From Chlorokybus atmophyticus (taxonomy: Eukaryota > Plantae > Mesostigma and Chlorokybus algae), in NCBI GenBank assembly GCA_009103225.1, contig RHPI01000638.1, positions 1 to 64,000 of the forward strand: 64,000 nt of DNA, in the 5' to 3' direction. Of the stretch, positions 11,607 to 51,297 are shown piece by piece. A model generated the notes under the pieces. That model saw only the letters and a list, made by a program, of their open reading frames with translations. It was not told the origin of the DNA and did not search any database. The position numbers were made by a program, and so were the translations under genes. How positions within the stretch are numbered: position 1 is the stretch's first letter; each line of letters begins with the position of its first letter.

Positions 11607-13430
11607 TGGCGTTTTGAGGGTCAGTGTATGGGTGCTTCGTGCACATCATTAATTGACACAGGTGCAAACCACAATTTGGTGGAACACGCTTGGGTGAAAA
11701 GAAATAACATCACATTCACACCAGTCGCATCGTATGTACGAGCAGCTGCTTCTACTCTTAATGCTTTATGAGAAGTGATAGGACGCTTTGTTATTGCCGG
11801 TTGTAAAACACATACCACATTTATTGTGGTGAACATTGGGATTCCCGGTGTTAACTTTGTGTTAGGTGAAATGTGGCAAACCGAAGCAAGTATGCTACTT
11901 AATGCTCAAAATGGCACGTGCACTTTGAGGAGGGGGAAACGATCTTTCACCTTGAAAGTGGCACATGTGGTACATGATAACAAGCATACTACTCCACTTC
12001 TCTCCGCTATGCAACTTAAGCGTTGCATGCACAAACGAGAGGAAATGTACTTGTTACACTTACATGAGGTAACAACACCCAAAAACGATGGTGTACAAGA
12101 CCCCGTTGTGCAATCACTTACACAGCAGTATGCTGGTGTTTTTCAGGAAGAACTCCATGAGCTCCCTCCTGATAAAAACATTCACCACACCATCCCACTC
12201 GAAGAGGGAGCTAAGCCACCATGGCGTCCTATTTATAGGCTAAGTCCTTTAGAGCATGCGGAAATGGAAAAGCAGCTAAAGGAGTTGCTCGATAAAGGTT
12301 TGATTACCAAGAGTATCTCCCCATTTGGTGCACCCATTCTATTCGTGCCTAAAAAGAATGACAAGTTGCGTATGTGTGTGGATTATCGGACTTCAAATAA
12401 GGTGATTGTAAACAACAGGTACCCTTTGTCCAGAATTGATGATTTGTTTGATAGATTGTCGGGTGCAACAGTGTTTAGCACACTGGATCTGACAAGTGGT
12501 TATCATTAAATCAGGATTCCTCCTGAGGATGTGCAAAAGACAGCTTTTCGTACACCTATGGGGCATTTTGAGTATAAAGTGTTGCCCTTTGAGTTAACGA
12601 ACGCACCCACAACGTTTTAGGCAGCTATGAATGTTGTGTTTGTGGATGAGCTGTATCACTTTGTGCTCGTATCTGGATGATATTATTGTATATAGCAATA
12701 CCCGAGAGGAACACCATAAGCATTTGCAAACGGTGTCGTCAAAGTTGCAAACACAAGTTCTATGCCAATCTGTCCAAATGCAACTTTGCACAAGAAGAAC
12801 TTCCCTTTCTAGGACATGTGATTGGCAGAGACGGGTTGAAGCCTGGATTCCACAAGGTGTCGGTAGTCAAAGACTGGCCACCACCAAAAGATGTGCATCA
12901 ATTACGAGCCTTTCTAGGCTTGGCCAATTACTTCCGCAAGTTCATGCGAGGGTATTTGACTATGGCCAATGCATTAACATCTCTACAAAGTAAAGTTGTC
13001 AAATTTGGATGGACGGAAGCACATAAGAATGCCTTTTCATGCATCAAAGATGCATTGACATTGGCATCCGTGTTAGCTTTTCCAGATCCCACCAAAACCT
13101 TTTGTGATGGTCAGTGATGCATCCACCATAGGATGTGGTGCAGTTTTGCTTCAAGGCGACAAGCCGTGTGTCTATGAAAGCAAAAAATTCAACCCTGCCG
13201 AGCGTAATTACACAATCACCGAACAGGAATTACTCGGTGTTGTGCATGCGTTACGCACTTGGCGCTACTATTCAGGAGGGGTGGAATTCTCATTAATTAC
13301 GGATCACAATCCTCTTACCTTCTTTCACACGCAACAAAACCTATCCCGACGACAAGCCAGGTGGAATGAGTTCTTATCCCGTTTCACATTCACATGGCAG
13401 TATCGTCCGGACGCACATTAATTATCCATA
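11607..13430 (+). pseudogene. Gypsy pol: aspartic protease, RT and RNase H; stops and frameshifts; integrase absent
   Basis: Motifs [81 protein letters not shown]. Confidence 0.9.
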
Positions 13431-16344: not shown

Positions 16345-16481
16345 TGTTAAGATTTGCATACTATGGATCATGCATGGAGTTGGTGCAAGCACAAGCACAC
16401 ACACTCTACTAGAGCATACACACAAGGCTGATGCAAAAAAGGCGGTCTAAGGATTACAACAAAGTCACACCGCGGGCTTTG
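16345..16481 (-). repeat. Distal part of the 3' LTR of inverted copia D (remainder at 28872-29194)
   Basis: Rejoined across the Sola insertion it reads GGCGGGTATACAAAGCCCGCGG on the minus strand, matching copia A LTR GGCGGGTATATAACCCCGCGG. Ends CTTAACA. Confidence 0.8.
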
Positions 16482-16981
16482 GCGTGCCGCACGATCCTGG
16501 GGGACAACTTGTGGACGAAACAGTTGTTTGCAAACGATGTATGATTCTTGTGTTTGCAGAAAACATCTACCACCTTGTTGGAAATTGTTTGCCAACAGTC
16601 GCGCAAACATGTTGCAAAAGCTTTGCCAACAGATGCACATTCAGGGCGCAGTTTCATGTGATTTACACGAAATTTGTAAAACGTGAAGTTGTAAAGACTT
16701 AGCCAACGGATGCACATAAAGGGTGCAGCTGCACATGTTAGATGAGGGTTGTTTGAATGTTGTACTCATCAAAACTTTGCCAACAGCAATGTTTCATATT
16801 TCATAATACCTGTCACAAACCGACACGACAACATGCTGTTGCTGCCTTAGTTGGTCAATGTTTGCCAACGGTGCGGAGGTCATATCAACAATTTGCAAAG
16901 CATCCAAGTCGACTGCTCGATTGTGTGACAGCCATCATTATGAGTGTTCATACCGGCTACTAAAGCACATTTAAGATCATC

Positions 16982-19960
16982 TCATGGTGCTTGTCGCGAA
17001 TTACAAAGACAGACTCTTTGATTTTTTTGCATGTCATCCTCGCTGAGATGCATCTCTCTTGCTTCTGCTCTCGACTTTCTTGAACCGTTGGAATCCGTGC
17101 TACGCACCTCAATAGGTTCACCTATATTCTGGCAGGCTTTTGTGGCTGGGGCGGTAGGAAACATAAGTACCTCCTGGGATATTTTGCCGCTGTCACAATA
17201 GAGTCATCAACTCTACGAAAGTAGACGCCTGTGACATATAGTGTGTCTGGAGGTATAATGACACCATAAGCGTCCGGCCTCGTCGACTTGGCTGTGCTTG
17301 TGGCCACTTGTTTGGTGCATTGTAAAACCCAATATGGTGCAGAGGCCTGATACTCATCTGAGCATTTATCAGCAGCTACCACAAATGTGTCTCCGACGCT
17401 TAAGGAGAGCGCCAACGCCTCTTGGTTTGTGAACAGCAACTGCACATGGCACATGTTATGACACTTACAAGCCGACGTACAGAAGTGTAGCACTCACATC
17501 TTGCTCAATCTCTTCTCCGTCTTCCTCACTTGCGATCAACTTTTGTCGCTGCCATTTGGGAACGTGAGACTTGTTAACATGGTGGTTGTAGTCTTCGTCT
17601 AGGCAGCTGCTGCAGAAGCACGAGAACCTTCGGAAAGTAAAGCGATCTACTTCTCCAGTTCCCTTCATGCATTGAAATTGCAGAGTGCCTGGCACTAAGC
17701 GATAGGAGTGCCCGGTTTTCTTGTGATCCACCTCTTCAAGTTTGACAAGATGCCCAAAACGTTTTTAAGCTTTTGCTTGCTCTTCACGGGCTGTATATGA
17801 TGACTCCGCTCCTCGGCTAAGCACCTTTTGCGCATAATGAACTGTTGTTTCGGCATCAAAATCGCAGCACCTTTTTCGCTAGCCCTATATAGGTGCCGTT
17901 TCAGTGTTCCTCCTTGACCATCATGTTCACCCTTGCCTTGACAAGGATAATGCCATTCCATATGTATCGTGTTGAACTCGTCTACTTCCGTGTCCATGGA
18001 CGCCAAGTACCCATCCGGGGCGCTGTACTGAGCAACTTGCGCGAAATGGTTGGCACATTTGTGCTGCACTGCACAGTTGTCACTCCAGCTGATGACCTTC
18101 TGCATGTCTACGCCTCTCTCTCTTTAGTCCCTGAGCAACCGCTTCATGCAATAGCGTACAAAGAAGGAGTCCTTTTTAAGATCATCGGATATCCAAAAGT
18201 GAACCTGCATAGTGATCAAATGCTGACACCCCTTCTTATCTGCTGGCAAAGTTTGACCAATACGCGGGTTTGCGAGCTCACCTCTTTGATGCGCACCGGC
18301 TGTTGTCTGTTGATGTCTCACCATCGACATGATCTTGAGCGTGACGATAGATGAGTTCCACCAAGATCGCCATTGAGCGGTTTGCAAAATGCTGCTGCAT
18401 GAGCTCGTTGCTTGGCTTGAAAGCATAGTTCCCAGAGAAGTCAATGATACCAACGATGGTGCCTTGACAAAAGGTTTGCAAGCACTGTCTCTGCTGCTCT
18501 GCTTGCCACTGCGACAAGAAGAAGTGGAGCTTAAAGTCCTTCAGCTGCTTCTGCAAGCGGCTGATAAATTCAATAAAGGTCATCAGCTGCTTGAGAAAAT
18601 CTACTCTTGCGTACTCTGTGGCTTCACCGTTCTTTGCTTTGCCTGGCTGCATGCGCTTTACGTAGAGCCTGGGTTGTAGCAGTTGATGCTTATCTGCTCG
18701 CTCTAACGGGCATGTTGGGAATCTAATCTAGCAGCAGTACAGCGATCTCCAGAAATACAGAGGTGATTGTAGTAAACGCCGTCCATTTCTTTCTTCTCGC
18801 AAGAAGTACAGTCGAGCAAGCCGGTAATTGACGAGCCCGACTTCGGTGATTTCAATAAATGGCACTTTGTATAGATACGACATCTGCAGCGGTGTCGGCA
18901 CGTGCAGTCTTTTTGGACCTACATGCTGTTACATCTTAAAGCGCATAATGACAACCCACACATGCATCGTAACTAGTCTTACGGGACACACAATGCATTG
19001 GCATCTGCATTTTACGTGCTTTCTCTGCCGGAAAGATAAACCCATCACAAGCTCCTTCATCTCAGTGTGCTGCGAACACACGCATACGTGCCGCACGTCG
19101 CGACCTCTTACATAGTACGGCTTGACCTTCTCGAAAACTCGTTGATGCACGTCGATATCTGAATTTTCAACTCGGAACTTGAGGTACAGTGCCGTTTGTG
19201 TAGTGCCTCCATAAAAAGGCTTGGTGACGTACTCGCCAGCTAGTCTTTTGCCGGTGGACGTACGCAGCAACATCTTATCACGCTTGCATGCAGACTCTCT
19301 GGTGTTCATGATCCAAAATTCTCCGATCTTTTTACATATCTCTGATGTCACCCTTTCTTTTCGTGCACGGCGCCCTCGAGTGCTCCAGTCGTATGTTGTT
19401 TTTAATAGAATCTATGACGGCGTATGTTGAGCACAGAAGCAACCTCGCAAACTCGTGCCGAAGAACCGTTGGCAAGTAATGATCTTGCTGCTTTTATTGT
19501 AACATTCCTTGCCGTCCTATGCGCATTGGAGCGGGAGCTCTTGACGCTGTTGTATGACGACTTGAACATGTTGGATATCGTTTTGTGCGCTGAAGCTTTT
19601 TTTACAATCTCCAAATAGCTATCTTGAGCGACGGCTGCTGCATTCTTTAGTTCTTTTATCCGGGATCTCAGAATGTTGGCTTTGATGGTGTCATCTCCTT
19701 GGCAGATTTGTTCGAGTACATCTTGCATTGCGGCAACTGACTGCTTGACTCGGTATCCCTTTGCTCTTTGTCGTCCTCCTTGAGATTGGGACCCATTATT
19801 CGCAGACCTGCCATGAGATGGCAAAATTATACCAACAACGCAGGCTGTAAAGGTGAGTGAAGGCGAAGCTTGCTGACCTAATTTGAGTTGGTTAAATTTT
19901 ACCAACAACACAGGCAATGAATGCAACAAGAGCCGTCGAGTCTTGCGCTGACACAATCAT
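16982..19960 (-). pseudogene. Sola2-like DDD transposase (multi-fragment, frameshifts, probable introns; 5' end uncertain)
   Basis: Motifs FEKVKPYYVR..VCVCSQH, IIDFSGNY (D about 18440), WISDDLKKD, ISWSDNCAVQHK (D about 18079), GKGEHDGQGGTLKR (D about 17920), RRFSCFCSSC. Confidence 0.8.
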
Positions 19961-22320
19961 CAGCACTCAAGTTGGCAGATTTCACCAGCAGCTACAAAGC
20001 TTTTCCCAGCTGCCAAGCTTAAACAAGCGTGCATCATCATTCTACGGTAAGCTCTATCATAGTTTTATGCTCCAGCCCGCGTAATTGCATCAATATTGAC
20101 AATATGGTCAAGCACTAGTTGTCAAAGCTTTCCCAACAATGATGTTGCTGATGGACACAAAACAAAGTGACATGGTCCATATTGGCATTATGCGTCATGA
20201 CCACTTTTGCCAACTCTGCAAGTTGTCAGCCAATGTTGTTGACAGACATAGCATGCAAGGCACAGTGCAACGCGACTGGTAGTGCCATACCTCTGGCTTT
20301 GGCTATGCACCACACCCAGCCGCCATGCGGCCGTTGTTGAACAACATCATATCTCCAGGCCCCTGCTTGTTGCCGCACCCCTCGACTCCTCAAATGTATA
20401 CGCAACCACTGCGCACAGCAATGCGTCACTATAGAGCACAGCATGCATCCGCACCACTTGCATTTGTGTTCAATAAAACCTGCACACATAGCAAATACAC
20501 ATGCCTACCTTAAACACTTTTCTACCTCACTCTTAACTGGCAATGAACACACAACTGGACCTGCCTACACGCTTCGTAGCATGACGGCACAGCAGCGGAT
20601 GTGCACGTTATACGCAAACCAAGCTTGGTACCAGTTGAACAGCAGCAACTGGGCATCTCTACATGTGCTTCGTATGTGGATCCTAGCATTCACATTGCTT
20701 AGCTGGACCTGCCTACACGCAGCATGATATGCAGCATGAAAGCTGATCCAAGCAGTGCTTACCAGCTCTGCGCTAGCTCCCTTAGCCGCCTAGCCAGCAG
20801 CCAGCATTGTAGCGCCACCGCTCACATTGTAACTAAGCAAAGGAGAAACGCGCTACTCTAGTTTTGCACAGAGGACCCAGCTGACCCGCCCCCGCCGCCG
20901 CCCTGGCCGCCACGCCCGCCGTCGCCGTAGTCGCAGTGTGTGCATGCAAGCAGTAGCATGCAGGCAGAAGCTCAGCTAAGCTCCGAAGCTGCTGGTAGCA
21001 TGCATAAGTAATTGATGTTTTGCTTTAAAATGTTAATATTTACATAATAATATATGAGGTTTACAATGCAAAGCCCCGTAAGACAATGTGCATGCGTAAC
21101 GATATGCCTAAAACTAATCTTCAATAACTTGTCATGTTACGTAGCGGAGGGCACTTGTAATTGCAAAGCTCCGTAAGACAATATGCATGCGAATCGTTAT
21201 GCCAAAAGTGAATTGTGATGTTGAAGTTGATTTATTTACGGGATAATCAATGACCGTATCACATGTCTCTAAGAGAGCGTGTAAGGTAAGCCAGGACAAG
21301 CCAAGACAAGAGAGACAATGGGACGAGACATCCACTGACAACCGCGCTAGCAACATTAATGTTTGAGTGACCGTTAGTGATTGCTCCCCACATCACCGTT
21401 ACACAACTCAAGAGTCATCAATAAAATTAATGCAATGCATTGTAACGTTCATATATGTAAACTTACGTAAATTTGAAACAATTGGCACGTTTTGTTTGTG
21501 TAACCATCTGATTGTTAGCTTGGTTTTACATCTACGCATCACCTTGCAATTGATGTGGTAATATTTGCAATGTTCACTCGAAAATGCTTATCGCATAAAG
21601 TATCGTAAGTGCGCGTCGACATGCTACGAGTATATATACATGTGTCAATCATGACACCCATGATGTGTTGTGGTTCTCATGCTTGCATACGCATAAACAA
21701 GCTCGATGAAAGCATGCACAACACAAGCTTGCGGTAATGTCTACTGTAATTGATACACACACAATGCGCATATGCAATTGCGTCTTGTTATTACATCACA
21801 TATAAACATGCACCACACCATCTTGATAGGTACATGGCATCCATTGATGTGATGTTCACATCCATGTTACAATTGTCAATCACTATGTTGTAAGCAACAC
21901 ATGCAAATAAGACTATAAACGTATGCTATAAACATATGTGTATGCCTACAACCAAATAATTGCGTAACAACTTTACGCGTGGTTAATCGTTGGGTATGTT
22001 TATGCCTAAGCATTTGCTTGAATGTTATCAACATATGATGTATATTGGGACTTATTACTATTGTACTTACTCGCATGTGTCCACAACTGATTGATGTGTA
22101 GCATTGCTACACTCACTAAGTGGTTTATGCTATGCAGCATCATCATGAGCTTAACAAGCTTAACCCTAAAACTACGAGTTGTTGTAGGGCTCACGGAGCT
22201 CGGCAAACCCTAATGTTAGACCGACAATACCTAGGAGCAAGGGCGAGCAGCAGCGCTGAGGGCAGGGGTGAGGGCGGCGAGGGCGATGGCACGGCGGCGA
22301 GGTGCGGGCGGTGAACAACG

Positions 22321-25300
22321 ATGGGGCGATCCAAGCGAAACGCCTTGAAGGACAGCCAGAAGGACAGCCAGGCCAGCGAGAAGACGGCCACAAAAAGGCA
22401 AGTTTTTAAGCTGTGAGTGCATGTTAAGAATCAGAAACAACACGAACACGAACATGCATGTTGAGAACGAGAAACAACACGAACACAAACATGCATGTTG
22501 CTGCTGGCAACCCTGCAGCAACATGCAAGTCCGTTGCTGCTTGACAACTTGTTGTATTGTTGTACTGATTGCAGCACAGTTGCAATCAATTGCAATCAGT
22601 TGCAATAGTTCGTTGCTACTTGCAACTGTGCTGCAATCACCACAATAAGTTGCCAGGTAGCGACGAACCTGCGTGCTGCAGAGTTGCCAGCAGCAACACG
22701 CATGTTCGTTGCTACTTGCAACTGTGCTGCAATCACCACGACAAGTTGCCAAGTAGCAACGAACATGCGTGTTGCAACACGCATGTTCGTTGCTGCTTGA
22801 CAACTTGCATGTTGTGTGTGTTTTGTACATGTTGTCGCAAGCATGCAGTACGCGCAATTGATTCTTGAATAGATTGTCTCCTTGTCTGCTTGTCTTTCTC
22901 ACAATGACAATGACTAACGTTTTGTGGCTCTGCAGAAAGATAAGGGCGAGCGAAAACAAACGCAAAGCGGAGGCGAGCAGCAGCCGTGCCGAGGATGCCA
23001 AGAAGAAGCGGGGAGCCTCTATATAAGTACCGAACTGCTGCATTGCTGCTGGCAACATCAGTTGCATCAGTTGCATTGCTGCATCAGTTGCATTGCTGCA
23101 TCAGTTGCATTACTGTTTGCGTTGCTGTTGCATTGCTGCTGGGCTACCGCTGGTCTACTAAACTTGTTGTAAGCATCTTCCGCACCAACACTAGTGCTTG
23201 GTACAGAAACTATTTTTATATCGAGACGCTGTACTCTGTTGGTGGCAGCCAGCAGGGCTGTAGGTCTTGCCTATTGGCTAAATTCTGCCAACAAGCTGTA
23301 GCAGCTAGCGTTGATGTGGGTCTGTCTTCTCTTGCCTGTTGGCCAAATTTTGCAAACAAGCCGTAGCAGCAAGCAGAGATGTGGGTCTGCCTGCTCTTGC
23401 TTGTTGACCAAACAACAAGCTGTAGGTCTTGCTGCTAGTGCAATAGCCCCACTGTAAACAGCAGCTGTTAAACATCTATCATTTACGCAGTCCTCCACAA
23501 AAGTCGCGACCCCTTGAAAGGGTCTCTGACAATGACGACGACGAGGACAGGCAAGACGATATAGACACTAAAAGTAACCCCTCTGAATCGGAGGATGAGC
23601 CCGATGTTGATCAGTACGATGAGCTCAATGAGGAGGATAAAGCCTTAAAAACAGGAGAATACCACTGTGAGTTTGTTTCTCTATGCGTCTTGCAGAAATG
23701 CTCAACAATTGCTTGACAGTGTGATGTCATGGCAGGGAATACAATACACATTAAAAATGGCAGCTTTTGGAAAAGATTTCAAGAACTTGAAGACTTCGTG
23801 AGCTGTTTAAAGGAGCAGCTCAAAAATTACATAACTTGTATAAGTGGGAAGTTGTCAAAGACGAGACATTGATAAAAAACAAACAGAAGATTGTGCTCTA
23901 ATTTTTAACAATGACAAAAAAGGTATGTAGATGTCAAACTGAGATCGTTTTACCCTCTGAATTGTAGCAAGCAAGTGCTGGTGCAGAACGACCTTGAATT
24001 CCAATACCGTCTCATCTACGCATGGTCTTTTGTACCAAAAGAAGTGCGAGCGCTGGTCATTCCAGCATACATGTATATGTATATATATGCAACAAACCCA
24101 GACGACGAGTTTCTCACTGATCGCAAAGCCTTCATGTTCGACCTGCCCGTCAACAAAGCCCATTAGACACCATTAGGGACAAAGCTGGTCTGTCTTAAAA
24201 ACGGCAAAGATCTGTGTGACATAATGGTCAAAGACGTCGCCAGGGCTAAGAATCCACCGTCGCTCATCAATCTGTACGAGTCTTTGCAAGGTGCAACCTT
24301 TATCGATCGTTGAGCCCACAACAACAAACAATGTGCAACTATTATTCGCAACATTGTATATATGTTGCAGGCATGACAGCAGAGACGCTCGGCTTAAAAG
24401 CTGATCCCTCTCAGCTGCCGTCGCCAAACAAACGCAACAAGGGCAAAACACCAAAGACTGATATGGTCATCCCTGCGGATACGGAGGGTGCAGCAGGTAT
24501 GCAAGCATTGGTTTTTATATATGCAATGCCTGCCTACATTCATCGTGTTGATCAAATTTTACCAACTGTGCAGGCGATGCTCTGCCAATACAACTGCCAC
24601 CCCTGTTCTCAAACGTTGATACACATACGTATAAAATTAGCCCGTCAAAATTGCGCCAAGCTGAGGGAGCTCATCAAGCGCGCAAAATTGGAAAAAAAGC
24701 AGGTTGACTTATCTGCAACAGGCCATGAGAAGTGGCTTCAGCAAAGAGCACAAGCCATGGCTTCTGCTAGCATATAGAAACGACAAAAGACGAGAAATGC
24801 CAGTCAAAGAGCAGTATTTCAATAAGTATCACATCGACCGCGCAAATGACTTCACTTATGAAGTGCTCGGCGGCAACCACTCCTTTATCGTCAAGTCCAA
24901 GCTAGCCCAGGAGCAGCCAGATAATGAGTGGCTGCAATTTGAGTGGTGTGAGGTATGACAGCGTTCAACTCATTGCGCATAACCATAAAAAGCACGCTGA
25001 TTGTGTCAATATGTCATTACAACAGGTAGTGTCCGGGCTCAACGACGAGCAGGCCCACCTGTACGCTAGACAGCACAACGAGCAAGACGACCACAAAAAG
25101 CCGCCCACTTTTTTAACAAAAGTCGCCACCTTCCGTGACAAAGACTTCGCGCGTGGCAGCCCCGCCAATTGGCTTGCAAGCCAAAAGTCGGGCCTGGCTC
25201 AAACAAGTACTCAGATAATTGGAAAGCTTGCATGTTAGATCTGGCCTTGCTCATGGACAACGTAATCAAGTGGAAGGGCAGAAACTACAAATTCATCTTT

Positions 25301-28283
25301 AGAGAGTACAGGCCTGAAATCGCGTAAGTCTGCACTAACTATCTTTATAAATATTTTGCAGTGTCGGATACCAATGTTAATGTTAATCAACCTACGCAGG
25401 CTGGCTGTCAAACTGCCATCAACTGAGCAGGAGTATGAACGCTTCTTCCAAGTCCTTGATGATGTTGACGACATCATCAAGCCATTGCCTCGCCATACCT
25501 TTGAGCTGTTTACTCATTCGTCTGGAGAGCAGATCACGAAGGTGCTGGACGACATTAAAACTAGCATAATTGATGTTAGCGTGCACCGAAAGTCAAGCCC
25601 TATGTGCTGAATGTGCAGCGCAAAAAGCGCTTTGTGTCATATTTGGCATGTAAAACTATACCTGGCGAAGTGTTTGGAACATCTGGGTAAGTATGCATTG
25701 CATCGACTGTATACCAGACATGAATGACGGCAATACTGACAGTGTGAGCAATGTCATTAGGTCTGAAAGTCGCTTAGAGGCCCAGGCGCCAGAGTTGTAT
25801 GCTGCACAAAACCAGCTGTTTGAGACTCTTCTCAAAGGTGGCCATAACCTCTTCTTCAAGCAGCTCATGAACGTCAAAGCTGACTCGGAATCCAAGCACT
25901 CTGTAAAGCTTCTGCACATCCCATTTGCCATCGTAGACAAAGTCTGCCAGCTTGGCAAAACACCTCTCCCAGAGCCCCGTCAGGTCGGCGACCTCCTCGG
26001 CGCCGTAAGTATGCCCTTGTGAGTAGAAGCTGTGTTGCTAAACTTTTGCCAACATGTGTTCAACGCAGACATGCAGTGTCTCAACAGTTGCGCAGGTGCT
26101 TCCCTGTGCACGCTGGTTGCAATTGCCCTCAGCAGTTCCACGCCATCAAGCAAAGATGCGTACCGCATTTTCAGTCAGTGCAGAAGTTTCTTCAACAGCT
26201 GCACGATAAGGACTGCCCTTCCTTCCCTCTCGTGTTCTTTGATATTCCCTTCAAGGAAGACGAAGACCGCGACAAAGGCTTCAACATTGATGAGTTTCAG
26301 GAGATGATCGATGCACTGTGCCGTCATCATGGTGAACTAAGGTGGTGGACGCTTGTAGCCTTTGTGCCTTTGCAACACTCGAGTGCATGCAAGACTATCT
26401 TGAAAAACTCCGACGCATTCGTCGTTGAGTATACCAGCTACACGCACGCAGCTACAAGTAAGTACAGCCTGTCTTGTTTCTGCCTCTTTGTAATATTTCA
26501 CAATTGACAAACTCCACTTTGCAGAGATGCAAGTGTTTTTTGGCATATACAAAAACCAAGCGCGGACTGAGCCAGTCATCATCTCGCTGTACAATTAGAT
26601 TAATGACTCTTTGAAGGTCACTAATCTCATGACCTGGTTTAAGCTGCGTAAGCAGGATCACTTGGTCTGGCATGATCCCTCACGTCCCAGATTTTGCCAG
26701 CTAGGACCATATGAGGAAGAGTCGCCAAGCGTGGATGAGCTGAAGTCCCCCCCAGAAGATGCCAACAATGACGATACGGATGAGGGCGAGATAGAAGATA
26801 ACACTCTGGCAGTCGTAGCTGCCACGCTGCCTGAAGTTGACTTTTTTAAAGGCATAACCATTGCAACCACTGGAGCTGTAAAGCGGTGATGGCTTAAAAA
26901 GTTCTTAAGTGTTGAAGGTCAGCCACCTATCTGCTGGCAGCAAAGGCTTTGCAGCACTTTGGCCGGAGACTTTCTACTTGCCAGAAACAATGATAGCGAA
27001 ATATGGGTGCTTGACCTCGGTGCTGGAGCGGGTGGGTTAACTGACGATGCGCTCAAGTTGGGCTACAGCATCTTTGCTATGGACGATGATTCTACCAGCA
27101 TGTGCCAGCTTGAGGACAGGTTCTACAGCTACCGCAATGAACTCAAGCACTATGTGAGTCATTCAATGTTGGTAAAGTTTTGCCAACAACGTCCTGCTGA
27201 ATGACTTGCCGAAGTCAGTACTATTTGACTCACTTGCCACACTTGCTGGTGCAGCAAGAAAAGCATAGCACGCTGCGCTCAGCTGCTGCTAAAGACAAAG
27301 CAGCTGCCACGGGTTAGAACCAAGGACGAGGTCGTGCAAGAGCGCCTGATGGCCTGTTTCTCAGCATGAAGTTTGGCGATGTCAGGCACATGGCGTTTCT
27401 TTTGCGTTTGGTGGCTCAACCAGGCATAGCTGCAATCATTAAAGACGTATAAGACATGCTGGAGGACATCAAGGAATACCGCGATAGGCGCCGCAACGAC
27501 ATTTAATCAAGTAAGAAGCAGTGTGCTACTACTGTGGTTCATACTACATCGCTAACTTTGCTTACTTGGCACAGTTGACAAGTTCAGTGAAGTGAGGGGC
27601 AGCATTATTGGACAGAACTATCTAAAGCTCGAGGCCAATCTGCAGTCGCCTGCAGATCCCGTTAATGGACAACTCACTCAATTGAAGTCCAACCCAAACT
27701 CCGCATCTCGGGCAGCTTCGCTCATCACAGATGGTCAGGGTGCCAACGACAAAGCCCAAGAAACTGCGCGCAACGTTCAGGAGACACCGCAAAAAGGTGC
27801 AGAGCCGGTGACGCAGGACACAGCAAAGAACCAGCCAGCTCCATTGCCAAAGCCAGTGGAAGTGCTAATGGCAGCAACATATTAGCACTGCGCAAGTCCT
27901 CTTTGCGACATTGAAGTAAAGTCGATAAAGTCGATTTTAAAGATCCAAGCCCAACGGTTTGCCGCCATGAAGGTTGTCTCCGCCGCTTGCACCACCTGTG
28001 CTTCACAGAGTATTCGGGCTCCAAAGAAGGCAGCAACGCCCGGTGCCCAGGCAAATGGGTTGAGGCCAAGAAGAACAATAAACTAAAGCAAAGCTGGGTG
28101 GATAAAGTTTGCAAGGCTGGCAAGCCCGAAGGCGCGCTGAATGTTTGGGGCTGTATCAAGTGCATAAACTACCGCGGCTGCAACGAGTGTTCGGGTCCTC
28201 TGGCATTGATTGATGGCCAGCTAGGAGACGCCAAGCCAGTAAGCATTAGACGTGAAGTGAGAGATGTACCCCCAAAAAATTAG
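22321..28283 (+). CDS. Transposon cargo gene: basic/acidic N-terminus, ParB/Srx-like domain, beta-class DNA amino-methyltransferase-like domain and PHD-like finger (multi-exon, carries stops and frameshifts)
   Basis: Start MGRSKRNALK (22321). ParB-like QARKI..LTYLQQAMRSGF..P..YEVLGGNHS..CEV|VSGLNDEQAHLYARQHN (24625-25080). Catalytic-like LVFFDIPF (26241). WQQR..WVLDLGAGAGG..ALKLGYSIFAMDDD SAM motif (27007). C-terminal C..C..CRHEGC..HHLC..C. Splice junctions visible. Confidence 0.7.
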
Positions 28284-28871
28284 ATGATGTGACGTGTAGT
28301 GGCAGTGAAAACAGTGCCCTTGTAGAAAGGCAGTTGCCCTGTGTATACAGCCTTGACACTGTATGTAGTGCGCACGTTGCCTTGTTGTGATATTGTCACT
28401 AAAGCCCAATGTTATGTGCACACCCTCATCTGCTTGTATAGGTAGCTGTTGGCAAATCTTTGCCATCAGTTAGAAGATCATGCCGCACAAGATCAAAAAA
28501 TCATGCGTTTTTTGAACTGCTTGTACACATAGCTATAAGCAAACCTTGGCCAACACAGATACAATTTCATTCTGATTTCACTACAAGGTAGGCTCAGCAA
28601 TGTGCATTTTAGTTGGCTTTACTTGGCCAACAACAGTCAGCCTTACACTTCCAACGCATTTTGAAAAAAAAAAAAGCTGCTAGGAGACACAACAACACTT
28701 GAGAGACAATGCTACATACCTTGCTGATTTCCTCGCTGCAACTTACTTTGGCACATAACAACTGATGTCAAGCGCTAAGCAAAGTAAAGTAGTTGTCTCG
28801 AGATCGATGTCAAAATTCATGATGTACGAACAACTCCGTCCATGAGTTGTCCCCCGGATCGTGCGACACGC

Positions 28872-29597
28872 TTTGTATACCCGCCAGTTCTGCACCCGTC
28901 TACTCTAGAAGTCACCACAACTTCTACACTCAACCGATTCCTGCGCTCTAAGTTGCACCACGTAGCTACTTTTAAAAGCTTTCCAACAAGCTATAACACG
29001 CGCCAAACAATGATGTAACAACCGAGCTACAACGTTTCTTCTACAGCGCCTGGAAGTCTTTAGACTCCGGACTCGACTCCGCGCCTGAAACAATTTCGAC
29101 TAAAGTCCTCGCCTGGACTTTTCTCGACTGGCACCTTCTCGCGGCTATTCTTATCCACAGGGCAAGCTGACCGGATACAAGAATATATTCAACACTCCCA
29201 TGCGGGCAGCTTGGCCTTTAACACCTCCAATGCCAACTCCTTGCGTACTTATGCGCGACGAACTCCCATGCCATCCTTTGCTCTTTCAACCATCTTGAAG
29301 ACACTTCCCGCACCTCTCATGAGCGCCTCCTTAAAGCTCTTCACTTGCACACCCTTGTTGCAACTCTCATGGTCATTTGCATGTGCTCCCACGTGCTCAC
29401 TCTTGGCAACGTCCTGCACAACACCACCACCATGCTCCTCCTTCTTGTCCTTGCTGATGGTAATGCCTGCTGCAGCTCCCACGGGCTCCGAGACTGCATC
29501 TTCAGCCTTCTTAACACCATTCGCAACCTCCACACGTGGATCACTCCACCACTCGTATGTGACGCGCTCTTGGTCACCATCACTTGAGCTCCCGAGG
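28872..29597 (-). mobile_element. Inverted copia D remnant: proximal 3' LTR (28872-29194), PPT and about 400 bp of internal sequence
   Basis: Minus strand GGCCAAGCTGCCCGCATGGGAG|TGTTGAATATATTC matches the copia A PPT/LTR junction. The internal piece encodes KSFKEAL...RAKDGMGV*. Confidence 0.85.
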
Positions 29598-29639
29598 TTA
29601 GGGTTAGGGTTAGAGTTAGGGTTAGGGTTAGGGTTAGGG
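29598..29639 (+). repeat. Interstitial telomeric array (TTAGGG)7 with one TTAGAG variant
   Basis: Directly read. Lies at the junction between the copia D remnant and the resumed copia C. Confidence 0.95.
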
Positions 29640-32368
29640 AAGACTTCAGTCCAAGCACTTGTTGCAGCATCCTTGGAGTCTGCTCAGCTCTGGCACAGGA
29701 GGTTTGGGCATTTGGGCTTTAATAACCTTGCGCGCTTGGTGAAGGAAGACATGTTGGAAGGCATAAAGTTTAGTCCTGAAGACTTCCAGGCTGAGAAAGG
29801 TGTCATGTGCAGTCTTTGTGTCCTGGGAAAGCAGACCAGCCTACCTTTTCCTACCTCTTCTCACGTGAGTACGCGTTGCTTGGAGCTGGTCCATATGGAT
29901 GTGTGCGGTCCCATGCCAGTGACATCCAAGAGCGGGAGCTTCAAGTACTTTGTCACTTTCTTGGATGACTTCAGCAAATTGTCCGTGGTCGTGCCTTTAG
30001 CCTTAAAGTCAAATGTGGCTACGACAGTTCTGGAGGTTTTTAAGCTTCTAGAGACCCAGACGGATTTGAAGGTTGCTGCAGTGCGCTCAGACCGTGGTGG
30101 AGAGTTTGTCAACACTCAGTTGAAGGACTATTATGCCAAGAGGGGGATTAGGCATTAAACTACAGCAACCTACACTCCGGAGCAGAACGGGAAGGCGGCG
30201 AGGCTTAACCGCACGCTTTGGAGAAGGTTCGGGCCATTCTGACTGATGCCAACATGGAGGACTGCATGTGGACGGACGCGTTGCTGGCTGCAAACTTTGT
30301 GCGCAACCGTTCACGCGTGCGTTTTGAAGCCAAGACTCCGTGAGAGCTATTCACGGGCGCAAGGCTTGATGTGAGCATGCTGAGGGTCTGTGTTCTATTG
30401 CCTTTGTCCACGTACCCAAGCAGCAACGACAAAAGCTAGTCAAAGGTAGCCGGCGCGGCGTGCTCGTGGGGTACGAGACTGGTTCTCAAGTGTGGAGGGT
30501 CTTGCTGGCTGAGACCAAGAAGGTTGTGGTGAGTCGTGATGTGACTTTTGCTGACGGAGGAGTAGGAGCTGAAATTTTAAGCGTCGACAACACCTTAGAT
30601 TGCGCTGAGCTTTCAGAACCGAGTCTAGACCAGGTTCCGGGCAATGTTTCATACCAGGTCTTAAGGTCTTCAGGCCAGTCTTCTCCAGCCCAATGCAACA
30701 AAAGCACTTCAGCTCCTGTCACCACTGAAGACCAACACCAGCACCATGAGTCTCAAGAGCAGGGGAGGAGGTATCCTTTGCGTGAGAAGGGGGAGTCGAA
30801 GAGATTGATCAACCAAGCCATGGCTGCATCGAAGGCACTTGTGGGCTTAAAGGAGCCTAGCACCTATGAGGAGGCGCTTGTAGGTGCTGATGCAGATCTC
30901 TGGAAGAAGGCAATGGATGAGGAGATTGCTTCTCTGCTAGCCAACCAGACCTGGAGGCTTGAGACTATCCGGTTGACAATACACCCATCCCGGTCAAGTG
31001 GGTCTACAAAATCAAGAAGGATGGGCAAGGCAACACTGAGCGTCACAAGGCGAGGCTTGTCGTGAAGGGCTTTCTCCAGCAGGAGGGCATTGACTTCAAT
31101 GAGGTCTTTGCTCCATAGCAAGCACACAATATTTCGCACCATGCTGGGTTTGGTGGTTGCTTAAGACCTAGAGCTGCACCATCTTGATCTTAAGACCGCG
31201 TTCCTCTACGGCGAGCTTTAAGAGAACATATTTGTGCAACCACCCAAGGGCTACCATGAGGAAGGTCCAGATATGGCATGCAAGCTTGTGAAGGCCTTGT
31301 ATGGTCTTAAGCAAGTTCCCAAGTTTGGCACATCCGCTTAAGCAAGGAGCTTAAGCTGCTGGGTTTTAGCCCCAGTACTGCAGACCCAAGACTTTTTATT
31401 ATGCAGAGCTACAGGTCTTGCTTTTAGTTTATGTTGATGACATCCTTGTTTCTGCTCTAGACTTAAAGGACTTGGAGGGAGTTAAGGCTGGCTTGAGCAA
31501 GGCCTTTGATGTCCGTAACCTTGGAGAGGCCAAGTACTTCTTGGGCATTGTCATTGACAGGGATAGGCGGTCTAAGATTGCCAAGATCAGCCAGGAGCAG
31601 ATGGTTTTCAGAATTGTGGACAAGTTTGGGCTGCAACAGGCCAAGGTTAAGGCTACACCCTTGGCGGTAGGAGTTAGACTTGTGAAGTCTGAAAGTGAGG
31701 CTGATTTGCTGGACAAGACTCAGTACCCCTACAGCACTTTGGTCGAGAGTCTTTTGTACTTGTCAGTCAGTACTAGGCCGGACATTTCCCATGAGTCTTA
31801 GCCAGGTACATGTCTGCGCCTACCATGGAGCATTGGAGGCTGCAAAGGCGTGCATGCGCTATGTGGCTGGGACTTTCAGTGTCGGCATTACTTTTGGTGA
31901 AGGACCAACAGGTCTGGAGGGCTACTGCGATGCAGACTACGTAGGAAACTTAAACTCCAGGAGATCTACCACGGGCTACACATTCTTGATGAATGGTGGA
32001 GTCATCAGCTGGAGCAGCAAGCTTCAGCCCAATGTTGCAGTGTCTACTGGAGAGGCGGCGTACATGGATGGATCCCAGGCAGTTAAGGAGGGGCAAGCTT
32101 GGTTGCGCAAGCTGGTTGCAGAATTGGGTCTAGACCAGACTGTGATTCCCATGCACAGCGACAATTAAGGGGCCATTCGGCTCGTGAAGCACCCTATTGC
32201 TTCAGTCAGATCTAAGCACGGTGATGTCATGCATCACTTTGTACGGGAGCACGTGGAGAGGTGGAGTTCTTCTATTGCAAGACCGAACACATGCTTGCAG
32301 ACTTTATGACAAAGGCTTTAACCCCTGCCAAGTTCAAGACATGCTGCATGGGTCTAGGAATCCATTAA
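29640..32368 (+). pseudogene. Copia C GAG-pre-integrase, integrase, RT and RNase H (many stops and frameshifts)
   Basis: Motifs LWHRRFGH, LELVHMDVCGP, FLDDFSK, RSDRGGEF, EPSTYEEAL, LVYVDDIL, YCDADY..RRSTTGY. Confidence 0.92.
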
Positions 32369-38207: not shown

Positions 38208-39591
38208 TCAAGCAGCGGATATTGCGCCTTCCCGCTTCGACGACGCCTCTCGCGTGCCGATATCATCGACGTCCACCACCAGCGCGCATGCCCGGTATCC
38301 GTGTCGGTCGATGTCAGCGACATCGACGCTGCGGCGCCGATAACGATACAGGCCACCCGCCCTGCTCCCCTGCAGTGGCAGCGCATCACACGCAAGGAAG
38401 AAGTTGTCATCATTGATGCCGTTGTTGTTGTTGTCGACATCGACGTTGTCGTGCGCGACGACGACGGGGCGTGAGCGCTGTGAGCGCAGCATGCGGAAGC
38501 GGCTGGGGCGGGTCAGGCAGAGGCTGGTGAGGCAGGCGGCCAGCACGGAGGGGAGGAGGTGGAGCTGGTCTGTTGGTGCCAAGGACGAGTTGTGGGTGTG
38601 GATGATGTGTGTGTTTTGTGTGCGCGTATGCCCAGGAAAGCATTACGTACCACGCACACGCACACGCATACATACACACGCACCGCACAGCACGACGAGG
38701 ATGATGCTGGATCCCAGGGGCGTCCGCGTGACCGCGCAGCAGAGAGCCCCACCCACGCACATTGTTGCCAACACCTGTCATCACTGCTGCTGTTGCTGAT
38801 GATGCTTGTGATGGGGGTGATCACGTGATCATTGACGACAACTACACGCAATATGTGCGTGTGTAGTGTGCGTGCATGTCTATGGGTACCGGGTGCAGTG
38901 AGGGGATGAGGGCGTGGAGCGCCATGCCCGCAGCGGAGCCCGCCAGGAAGAAGGGAAAGATAAACCCGCCCCTGGGAAAGAAGTTTGTCAGGGGTGTCTC
39001 TCACTCATGCACCAACTCATCCAACACCCCCACCTGAACCCCCCGTGCTCCGCGAGGCTGATGGCCAGCAGCTTCCCGGCGCAGACGGCCGCGTTGGGCA
39101 GCCAGGTCGACTGGTCGTAAGATAACAACGGCTGCTTTGGCCAGATGTGGGGGAGGGGGGTGGCGCCGGCGTCGATCACGGACTGGACCTCTGTGTGAGT
39201 ATGTGTTTGTGTCGGCCTGATGGACTTCATGAACTCGCGCGCGTGCGCACGCATGAACGCACGCATTTGCACACATACACATGCGCACGCATTCACATAC
39301 GTGCACGCACGCACGCACGTTCACATGTGCCGTACCATACTCGCCCCACATGAAGGTCTGGGGCAGGAGGACCCCGAGTATGCCTATAGCGAGGCCGCTG
39401 AGGGTGGCTGCGGCTATGGTCGCTGCGGCGTGTTTGTCGTTGTGCTTGAGGCTCTGCCTCTCGTTGTTGCTGGTGGGAGAGGGAAGCGTGGCTTCGCTGT
39501 TGTTGTGCCTGTGTGCACCTTCACTGGAGTGCTGAGGGTACACATGCCCCAGAAGCCTGTGCATCTGCGGACACCCCCCGCGCATGCGCGC

Positions 39592-43801: not shown

Positions 43802-46730
<2,929 letters not shown>

Positions 46731-49059: not shown

Positions 49060-51297
49060 ATGGTGCGCGTGGCTGTCAATGGCTTCGGACGCATTGGACG
49101 ACTCGCATTCAGGAGAGGGTTCGGTGAGGCGCTGGGCACGATGCCAAGCATAACGTGTGCGCGTGCGTGCGTGCATGCGTGCGTGTCCTCCGTCCATCCA
49201 TCCAACCACTCCCTCCCTCATTCATTCATTTATCCATCCATTTATCCATCCATTTGCCCATTCCATTCAGCACTTGCTTGGTATACAATGCACCCGTTCA
49301 TTCACTCAATTGTCGAGTCATCCATTCAATCACTCATTCGTTCACTCAGATCTCCCTCTGCTGTCTATCTGTCCAGGCCTTCCCGGTCTTGATTTCGTTC
49401 TGATCAACGAGCACCCCGCAAAGCTCAAGACGGTGGCGTACCTGCTCAAGTACGACTCCGCCCACGGCACCTGGCACGACCATGACGTCAAGCAGCACCA
49501 GGACGGCGACGCCATCGTCGTCGACGGACAACGCGTCGCCGTCACCAACTCGCAGACGGTGCACGCTTGTATGCGTCTGATACTGTGCAATGCATGCGCT
49601 GCTGGCCCAAGGATGCGCATGACATCAATGTGCTCTGCTTGCTGGCCCGCATGAGTGCCCAAGTATGTCAAGCATGCATGCCGCTTCTCTGTCTACTGCA
49701 CGCAGTTGTACACGACTTCCAGCGAGGCTTGTGCACGCGTATACGCACGTGTTGGCACACAAGCTTGGCATGCGCATGCGACGACACGCAGTCATGCGCG
49801 CATGCGGTGTAGACATGGTGCTGAGGTGCTTTTCGGTGTCAGATTGAGGGCATTCCGCTGGAGGCGCACAAGATCGACCTGGTGCTCGACTGCACGGGAG
49901 TCTTTCTGACAGAGGCCGCACTGGCACCATACTTCACCAAGGGCGTGAAGAAGGTGAGGACAACACATGCGCACGGACGGGCATGCATCCACACACGCAC
50001 AACAGGGGGGACCACAACCTGATATGCTCGCACAGGTGCTTGTCTCTGCACCCGTCAAGGAAGCATCTGCGTTGAATATAGTCGTGGGCTGCAACGACCA
50101 CGACTACGATGCTTCAAAGCATAGGATTGTGACGGCGGCCTCCTGCACCACCAACAGTCTCGCGCCCGTCGTCAAGGTGGGTGGATGTGCGCTTGTTGTC
50201 TTGTGTTGTCTTAATGTTCTCAACCATCATGTGTTCTGCAGGTTATGCTGGAGAACTTTGGCATCAAGCACGGCGTGATCACAACCATCCACAACATCAC
50301 AAATACGCAACCAGGTGCCGTGGGGTGTGCTCTTGATGGCTAGTTGTGTCCCGGGTTACGCTCTCTCATGTGCTCAACATACGCATCACCGCGCAGTGGT
50401 TGATGCACCCATGGGCAAGAAGGACGACCTGCGAAGGTGAGTGCTTGTGCGCGCGTGCACAAGCCACCCAACGCAAATGAGTGCGTGATACTGCAACCAC
50501 CATTACTTGTAGGTGTCGGTCAGCTATGATGAACCTGTCTCCCACAAGCACAGGTGAGCCTTTGTACCCACCCATCGTGATGCTTAAACCTCACTGTTGG
50601 GTTGTTCTCATGGAGTGTTCATGTGCGCAGGCTCTGCCACAGCCATCTCATTGATATACCCACAATTGAAGGTGACACTGGGGCATGAGACGGGGTGCAC
50701 GTACGTGTATGTTGAGCACACAGCAATTACGTGTGTGTGTGTGTGTGTTCAGGGCAAGCTGCACGGCCTGGCGGTGCGCGTGCCGCTGCAGAACGCCTCC
50801 CTCACCGACTGCGTGTTTGAGGTGGAGCGCCCCACCACAGTGGAGGAAGTCAACGAGGCCATGAAGAAGGCCGCTGCAGATGGACGGCTGAAAGGTAAGG
50901 CGCACACACGCACACAGAGGTACATACACGCGCATGCACCCAACACGCACAAAGGGCACAAGGGCAAGCGTATTCGCGTGCATACAGGCTACATCAATGT
51001 GTAATACAGTATGCTGGTAGGTATTCTCGGTTACGAGGAGGAGCCGCTGGTGTCCACGGACTACATCAACGACCCGCGCTCTGGCATTGTGGACGCACTG
51101 TCCACCCTTGTTGTGGACGGCACGCTAGTCAAGCTGTATGTGTGGTACGACAACGAGTGGGGGTAAGCAAACCTGCATTACCAAGTGTAGTAACACAAGC
51201 AGATGGCTCAAAGCCACCATTTTTCGTGTGCAGGTACAGCTGCAGAATGATCGACATAGCCAAGAAGATGGCCGACTCAATGCAAGGAGCTTGTTAG
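49060..51297 (+). CDS. Glyceraldehyde-3-phosphate dehydrogenase, ArsJ-associated (bacterial Gap3-like) type, 11 exons, no transit peptide
   Basis: Motifs [84 protein letters not shown] introns. Confidence 0.95.

Follow-up and report, generated by a model that had tools for sequence, protein, structure and literature searches.

Whether a eukaryotic gene encodes a permuted, beta-type amino-methyltransferase, in which the catalytic motif IV precedes the binding motif I for S-adenosylmethionine (SAM), is the question raised by a locus of Chlorokybus atmophyticus. The window analyzed is a stretch of 64,000 nucleotides (nt), positions 1 to 64,000 of contig RHPI01000638.1, for which a preliminary description made from the sequence alone had proposed such an enzyme on the basis of the motif LVFFDIPF, placed ahead of WQQR and WVLDLGAGAGG. 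We found the motifs in the passenger, or cargo, gene of a Sola2-like terminal inverted repeat (TIR) transposon. With moderate confidence, we read the part of the gene that holds them as a permuted, beta-type amino-methyltransferase-like domain, in what is probably a dead copy.

Reading path of the cargo gene

The motifs reported previously (LVFFDIPF, WQQR, VLDLGAGAGG, an acidic insert, and an in-frame TGA at 26887) are all present at the sequence level. DIPF lies in frame 0, and WQQR and VLDLGAGAGG lie in frame 1; the two frames are linked by a canonical 67-nt intron, which puts the motifs on a single reading path. On this spliced path, DIPF (26241) precedes both of the candidate SAM motifs, here called region A (26836) and region B (27007), which is the motif IV-then-motif I order originally claimed. 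The features concerned are the following:

24373-27885, plus strand: spliced cargo gene model, from the ATG at 24373 to the stop codon at 27883-27885, with 14 exons and 824 codons
26088-26457, plus strand: DIPF exon, 123 codons in frame 0, a candidate for the beta4-alphaD-beta5-alphaE-beta6 half of an amino-methyltransferase, with DIPF at 26241-26252 and AFVVEY at 26415-26432
26458-26524, plus strand: canonical intron of 67 nt (GTAAGT...TTGCAG, phase 1), leading from frame 0 to frame 1
26525-27153, plus strand: frame-1 exon of 209 codons, which holds a TAG, the acidic insert, region A, a TGA, and region B

The order within the frame-1 exon is MQVFFGIYK (26527-26553), the TAG (26596-26598), LVWHDP (26662-26679), the acidic insert YEEESPSVDELKSPPEDANNDDTDEGEIEDN (26710-26802), region A, the TGA (26887-26889), and region B. 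Both stops are in frame; the TGA had been recognized in the preliminary description, and the TAG had been overlooked. No stop occurs among the 123 codons of the DIPF exon, against 4 and 6 in its other two frames, and in the frame-1 exon (26525-27153) the 209 codons include 2 stops, where the other frames have 10 and 24. The coding signal thus exceeds what chance would give. Because the 67-nt intron is canonical and these stop counts are far below those of the other frames, the two exons can be taken as one coding path, present or former.

All 13 introns of the model are of the GT..AG type. Eight are well signalled, measuring 67-101 nt, with GT(A/G)(A/T)G(T/C) donors and CAG acceptors, and the 262-nt intron at 27313-27574 has the weak donor GTTAGA. 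The 824-codon path is free of stops only when four extra introns of 32, 38, 42, and 45 nt (in this order, 25207-25238, 25581-25618, 26575-26616, and 26878-26922), two of them poorly signalled, are admitted, and for this reason this copy is probably a pseudogene, most likely put out of action by two lesions at least, and probably by four. If the four short introns were real, they would remove the two stops and two frame changes, and the gene would be intact, expressed, and able to produce an active enzyme of 824 residues. Such a stop-free GT..AG path does exist, and its 45-nt intron is bounded by good signals (GTAAAG as donor, CAG as acceptor), but the sizes of the eight well-signalled introns argue against it, as do the weak donors and the TAG or AAG acceptors of the 32-nt and 42-nt candidates and the presence downstream of a zinc-finger frame that cannot be joined to the model. 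We consider an intact gene very unlikely. The zinc-finger frame, for which a phase-compatible GT..AG join to the cargo model was sought and none was found, is as follows:

27915-28280, plus strand: Cys/His-rich, zinc-finger-like open frame in frame 0, with a zf-RING-like match (E=0.0034) below the curated cut-off

A separate observation concerns the introns of the host. Two open reading frames (ORFs) at 49157-49654 and 50597-51004 carry exons of the N and C domains of GAPDH (Gp_dh_N, 1e-8; Gp_dh_C, 3e-17); as some 1 kb separates them, the introns of host genes appear to be much longer than the 67-101 nt of the cargo gene.

The DIPF exon

Beta-class profiles were built from 75 bacterial YhdJ/CcrM-type genes, and a phage profile was built from 11 independent enzymes. 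A word search for YhdJ yielded close relatives only (68% identity or more) and by itself contributed little. In every profile tried, the motif-IV sub-profile aligned DPPY on DIPF, with these scores on the DIPF exon:

Motif-IV profile, all 75 bacterial sequences: 4.3 bits, reached by 6 of 1000 shuffles and by 1 of 831 windows of real proteins
Motif-IV profile, CcrM-like subset: 5.6 bits, reached by 0 of 831 control windows
Motif-IV profile, YhdJ-like subset: 1.7 bits, reached by 24 of 831 control windows
Motif-IV profile, phage set: 3.3 bits, reached by 3 of 811 control windows

These fractions overstate the significance, because the DIPF site was first picked for its motif. A fairer estimate, for a match that ranks among the top five and falls on the correct reading path shortly before a real SAM site, is roughly 1 in 100. 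DIPF alone is not significant; what gives it weight is its position ahead of a real SAM-binding motif of the same gene.

In alignments with hhalign, the DIPF exon was placed on template columns 16-104, and the exon that follows it covered columns 96-281. Two Pfam families and no others, PF01555 (N6_N4_Mtase) and PF05063 (MT-A70), were represented among the neighbours of the DIPF exon in the ESM Atlas, and a further neighbour belonged to a 'site-specific DNA-methyltransferase' cluster; the scores, 0.81-0.82, qualify these neighbours as leads only. MT-A70, a family marked by a DPPW-type motif IV ahead of a degenerate motif I, is a language-model neighbour at 0.81. AlphaFold2, run with single sequences, failed on both the DIPF exon (predicted local distance difference test score, pLDDT, 47.9) and the motif I piece (47.7). 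In the low-confidence model of the DIPF exon, the order of helices and strands fits beta4-alphaD-beta5-alphaE-beta6, to which we give little weight.

Several results weigh against a beta-type domain. The DIPF site is the fifth of the 209 six-frame matches to the motif-IV profile in the window, and the gene lacks DPPY, HPxxKP, and DPFxGSGTT in their strict form; in place of a catalytic (D/N/S)-P-P-(Y/F/W), it has LVFFD-I-P-F, with the first Pro changed to Ile. The search against the N6_N4_Mtase model, which had been suggested as a check, gave no match of PF01555 to any exon piece even at E≤10, and at that level the DIPF exon had no match in Pfam, NCBIfam, or PHROGs either. A phmmer search of this exon against 1.84 billion representatives returned two repeat-protein artefacts only, tblastn detected none of its relatives in two scans of metagenome contigs, in viral contigs, or in phage genomes, and a PDB sequence search, with this exon or with the ParB-like exon described below, found nothing. 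Foldseek gave no match for the DIPF-exon model, both AlphaFold2 models having a pLDDT of about 48. The full-length beta-class profile (75 sequences) scored the exon at -0.9 bits, rank 103 among the 1210 scored segments of the window, and showed no enrichment over all 1968 six-frame segments. Finally, the reading path is interrupted by two stops within the methyltransferase-like domain itself.

At 28053-28163, in the Cys/His-rich frame of the same gene, the motif-IV sub-profile reached its highest score anywhere in the window (5.8 bits), which is probably an effect of composition.

Two candidate SAM motifs

The frame-1 exon offers two candidates for motif I-II:

26836-26922, plus strand: region A, VDFFKGITIATTGAVKR*WLKKFLSVEGQ, a degenerate candidate for beta-class motif I-II (DPFxGSGTT..LGRxfIGIE), which spans the TGA
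27007-27090, plus strand: region B, VLDLGAGAGGLTDDALKLGYSIFAMDDD, a canonical class I SAM motif I with the acidic residue of motif II

WQQR is found at 26935-26946, VLDLGAGAGG at 27007-27036 (with a leading W from 27004), and the AMDDD of region B ends at 27090. Region B thus displays the class I pattern, hh(D/E)hGxGxG with an acidic residue about 18-20 residues further on (VLDLGAGAGG..AMDDD). The motif I stretch reads DFFKGITIATTG in region A and LDLGAGAGG in region B, and neither is DPFxGSGTT.

None of the profile matches of region B, to Erm (E=4e-4), KsgA (5e-3), and Methyltransf_25 (0.05), reached the curated cut-off; the PDB sequence search gave RsmC, Dim1, and KsgA, and the language model gave a score of 0.95 to class I fragments (Methyltransf_23/11/25, PrmA, MTS). 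As in PrmA, Erm/KsgA, and RsmC, the stretch VLDLGAGAGGLT..ALKLG..AMDDD matches motif I-II, with ALKLG identical to E. coli PrmA, a comparison in which 1 of 1000 shuffles scored as well. Unlike these enzymes, the Chlorokybus gene shows nothing comparable to strands 3-7 after motif II. That the best matches of region B are RNA and protein methyltransferases (Erm, KsgA, RsmC, PrmA) adds to the points against a beta-type domain. Best matches among RNA, protein, or small-molecule enzymes had been named beforehand as grounds for abandoning the assignment, and by sequence they were obtained for region B and not for the DIPF exon.

The main rival explanation builds on these matches. The gene could hold the remnant of an ordinary, non-permuted class I enzyme, with region B as the N-terminal half of a PrmA/Erm/RsmC-like protein whose C-terminal half has decayed or been deleted, and DIPF would then be a chance tetrapeptide in an unrelated linker domain. 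That all recognizable similarity of region B is to RNA, protein, or small-molecule enzymes fits this explanation, and so do the orphan status of the DIPF exon in every curated and large-scale search and the fifth place of its site in the window; in addition, frame 0 of 27318-27449 (LFLSMKFGDV..LLRLVAQPGIAAIIKDV) bears a loose resemblance to strand 3 and to the LkPGG of strand 5. However, a canonical C-terminal half (strands 4-7) was sought downstream of region B and none was found, and frame 0 of 27255-27510, tried as a candidate for it, found no support, with 3 stops in 85 codons, no Pfam match, and no similarity to PrmA. Moreover, for the DIPF exon the three beta-class profiles and the language-model neighbours point the same way, and the secondary-structure order of its model fits the half of the fold formed by strands 4-6. 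We regard the class I remnant as a possible explanation, although on the unlikely side.

A different division of the frame-1 exon emerged from the motif I-II profiles, in which stops were read as X. With the bacterial profiles, region A scored 4.5-5.4 bits, a level reached by 1 of 1000 shuffles and 10 of 2706 controls, versus 229 of 1863 controls for region B, and it was on region A, not on region B, that the frame-1 sequence aligned best with beta-class motif I-II. The distance from the D of DIPF to the E of SVE in region A is 202 residues, the family mode being 204-206, and the anchors FVVEY/IVWxY, MQVFFGIYK/YEPILxxK, and LVWHDP/NVWDFP are collinear (spacings counted by hand). These results would suit two modules in tandem, namely, a degenerate full-length beta-class domain that extends from DIPF to DFFKGITIATTGAVKR*WLKKFLSVE, with both stops as nonsense mutations, and a canonical class I module that starts at VLDLGAGAGG and is truncated in this copy. 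Two methyltransferase domains are also paired in the red-algal Plavaka PAG2 (bioRxiv 10.1101/2025.02.11.637652). The independent phage profile, on the other hand, did not support region A (230 of 2641 controls, not significant) and preferred region B (0 of 1818 controls). Region A also lacks the glycine-rich loop, scores a few bits in a match found post hoc, and could lose half of its length to the well-signalled 45-nt GTAAAG..CAG intron. We think that tandem modules are an improbable arrangement.

The disagreement between the bacterial and phage profiles over regions A and B is itself a point against a beta-type domain, as is the generic nature of the motif I-II profiles, on which E. coli PrmA scored 28.3 and 10.5 bits. 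Motif I-II is a generic part of every class I enzyme, and because PrmA scores far higher on these sub-profiles than the Chlorokybus gene, they cannot decide beta-class membership. Judging from the sequence, either region B closes the permuted domain, or a degenerate beta-class domain stops at region A and a second, truncated module starts with region B; motif IV would come first either way.

The favoured reading remains that of a permuted, beta-type amino-methyltransferase-like domain, whose order would be the strand-4 motif D-I-P-F with its alpha/beta units, then the variable acidic insert, and the SAM motif I-II last. Beta-class membership, as first proposed, is partly supported: the order of the motifs, the sub-profiles, the language-model neighbours, and the DIPY precedent described below speak for it, while the failure to match PF01555, the absence of the strict signatures, and the two stops do not. 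In agreement with the preliminary description, the target base cannot be read from the motifs, and neither the choice between N6-methyladenine (6mA) and N4-methylcytosine (4mC) nor whether the target is DNA can be told from these data.

The transposon and its palindromes

The cargo gene lies within a complete transposon, in which a palindrome recurs:

16482-28871, no strand assigned: complete TIR DNA transposon of 12,390 bp, with TIRs and a target-site duplication, which carries the methyltransferase-like gene
16577-28631, no strand assigned: 20 copies of the 20-bp palindrome GTTGGCAAA-NN-TTTGCCAAC, from a pattern count with shuffles

The TIRs are 21 nt long (16482-16502 and 28851-28871), their arms are 90% complementary, and the 4-bp target-site duplication, TTTG, is identical on both flanks (16478-16481 and 28872-28875). 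Short TIRs and a 4-bp target-site duplication are the marks of the Sola2 type, and the element is accordingly described here as a Sola2-like cut-and-paste transposon. Transposase-like ORF pieces are found on the minus strand at 17695-19956, opposite the strand of the cargo gene; a Pfam search of these pieces gave no model matches.

With up to 4 mismatches in 18 allowed, the palindrome was found at 20 sites in the element and at none in the remaining 51.6 kb of the window, and shuffles of the element contained 0.16 sites on average and never more than 2. The sites cluster at 16577-16869, 19817-20137, 23273-23357, and 28448-28631, with clusters at both ends and between the two genes, and single sites include 24547, 26034, and 27168, within introns of the cargo gene. 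The palindromes are candidates for binding by the transposase or by the ParB-like cargo protein.

Between the two divergently oriented genes of the element, inverted and tandem repeats are densely packed at 22418-22813 and 23265-23412. These arrays hold a 37-nt x2.2 repeat, several palindromes of 26-38 nt, and a 65-nt x2.3 repeat that includes the 20-bp palindrome, and they could be a shared regulatory or binding region.

The N-terminal region and the possible role of the product

Upstream of the DIPF exon, the product begins with a region that recalls ParB/Srx proteins:

24574-25206, plus strand: ParB/Srx-like N-terminal region in three exons (24574-24628, 24703-24952, and 25026-25206), a pattern recognized by eye only

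In this region, YEVLGGNHS stands where the GxxR box of ParB would be expected. No ParBc match was obtained for these exons in Pfam (E≤10), NCBIfam, PHROGs, or the PDB, and a profile of two phage ParB-N sequences gave no significant score; neither a ParBc-type profile match nor the GxxR box is therefore present to place the region in the ParB/Srx family. The assignment, a visual pattern without statistical support, is also to be counted among the points against our reading of the gene as a whole.

The best explanation of the product as a whole is a ParB/Srx-like N-terminus (as a pattern only), a helical linker, the methyltransferase-like domain, and a Cys/His-rich tail, in this order. In an intact copy, the N-terminal module would bind the 20-bp palindromes scattered through the element, and the methyltransferase would add a methyl group to an exocyclic amino group (6mA or 4mC) of the element's own DNA. 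Within this explanation, the sequence itself shows the motifs, the order in which they stand, the splice between them, and the surrounding transposon; the fold, the DNA target, and the binding of the palindromes are inferred. Intact copies of this Sola2-like family might thereby encode a self-targeting 6mA/4mC writer in an early-diverging streptophyte alga, in which a ParB-like module on some 20 palindromes delivers a strongly diverged, DIPF-type permuted methyltransferase and alters the treatment of the element by its host; we put this forward as a speculative proposal that is decidedly unlikely as it stands.

Comparison with known systems

The closest arrangement is that of the Ectocarpus giant transposon Sola1-1_Ec32, in which an accessory protein of 1104 residues with ParB-like DNA-binding and N4C/N6A DNA methyltransferase domains is encoded opposite the transposase (PMC12477816). 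The Chlorokybus gene is likewise a passenger opposite the transposase of a Sola-superfamily TIR element, with a ParB-like N-terminus followed by a methyltransferase, and both proteins are proposed to bind the DNA of their own element and to modify it. Compared by its published description, Sola1-1_Ec32 differs in that the Chlorokybus element is Sola2-like (4-bp target-site duplication, 12.4 kb) and comes from what is reportedly a streptophyte alga. The methyltransferase part of the Chlorokybus gene also falls below all Pfam thresholds, and it combines DIPF, the acidic insert, and a canonical class I SAM motif in a copy broken by stops. In red algae, Plavaka elements carry a ParB-oxygenase gene beside inverted-repeat arrays, together with an N6-methylase-SET gene (bioRxiv 10.1101/2025.02.11.637652), and ParB-methylase fusions are common in phages (PMC12704722, PMC4738411). 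Because ParB-like and DNA-methylase accessory genes have thus been published for algal transposons, this kind of passenger gene is already known; what distinguishes the present one is its Sola2-like frame, a divergence beyond the curated models, DIPF, and a clean canonical SAM site.

As in bacterial and phage PF01555 enzymes of the YhdJ, CcrM, M.RsrI, and M.PvuII types, motif IV comes before motif I, a helix and a hydrophobic strand precede the D-x-P-aromatic motif, and the spacing from motif IV to region A matches the family. The ParB-like N-terminus, here a pattern seen by eye, has counterparts in phage fusions such as the methylase of Wolbachia phage WO and that of Streptococcus phage Javan320. 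Unlike the PF01555 enzymes, the gene has DIPF for DPPY and neither HPxxKP nor DPFxGSGTT, its profile scores reach only 3-6 bits, and it has no Pfam or phmmer match. A D-I-P-aromatic motif IV, LVIADIPYNLG, occurs in orf18 of Lactococcus phage Tuc2009 (AAD37103.1; 1489-2247), and because this uncharacterized protein, a beta-class enzyme annotated as a putative methylase, has DIPY, Ile at the second position of motif IV has a natural precedent. In contrast to the Chlorokybus gene, Tuc2009 orf18 has a normal HPTQKP and the motif I DPCMGSGST, and it is a phage enzyme of 252 residues. Motif I reads DFFSGSG in the beta-class enzyme of Paenibacillus phage Sitara.

Eukaryotic 4mC writers of bacterial origin have been described in bdelloid rotifers (N4CMT; PMC8885841, PMC10406627) and in Marchantia sperm (N4 methyltransferases; bioRxiv 10.1101/2021.02.12.428880). 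Like them, the Chlorokybus gene would place a beta-type amino-methyltransferase in a eukaryote; theirs work in chromatin, fused to chromatin-reading modules. They are, however, clear and active host genes of the PF01555 type, whereas the Chlorokybus gene is a putative member, borne by a transposon and present as a broken copy.

Transposons with a passenger protein that both binds and methylates DNA could write epigenetic marks on themselves. To our knowledge, this idea has been raised for giant transposons of brown, red, and green algae and has never been tested. The present locus adds an example of the Sola2 type, from a reportedly streptophyte genome, with a candidate 20-bp binding site and an unusual D-I-P-F motif, and if an intact copy were active, it would give the plant lineage a route to 6mA or 4mC. 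As the copy is broken and its family membership unproven, its value is that of a lead to intact copies.

Other features of the window

ORFs of Copia-type and other retroelements were found at 6-1820, 11775-12509, and 29211-32250 (RVT_1 match), and the transposon therefore sits among retrotransposon copies. The repeats D8 and D10 link 420-1690 with 30984-32248. Further along, two stretches of 299 nt (38363-38661 and 44466-44764), 6.1 kb apart, are 100% identical, and a long microsatellite of the (CGCA)n type, with an 8-nt register, occupies several hundred bases of a high-GC stretch at 45457-46300.

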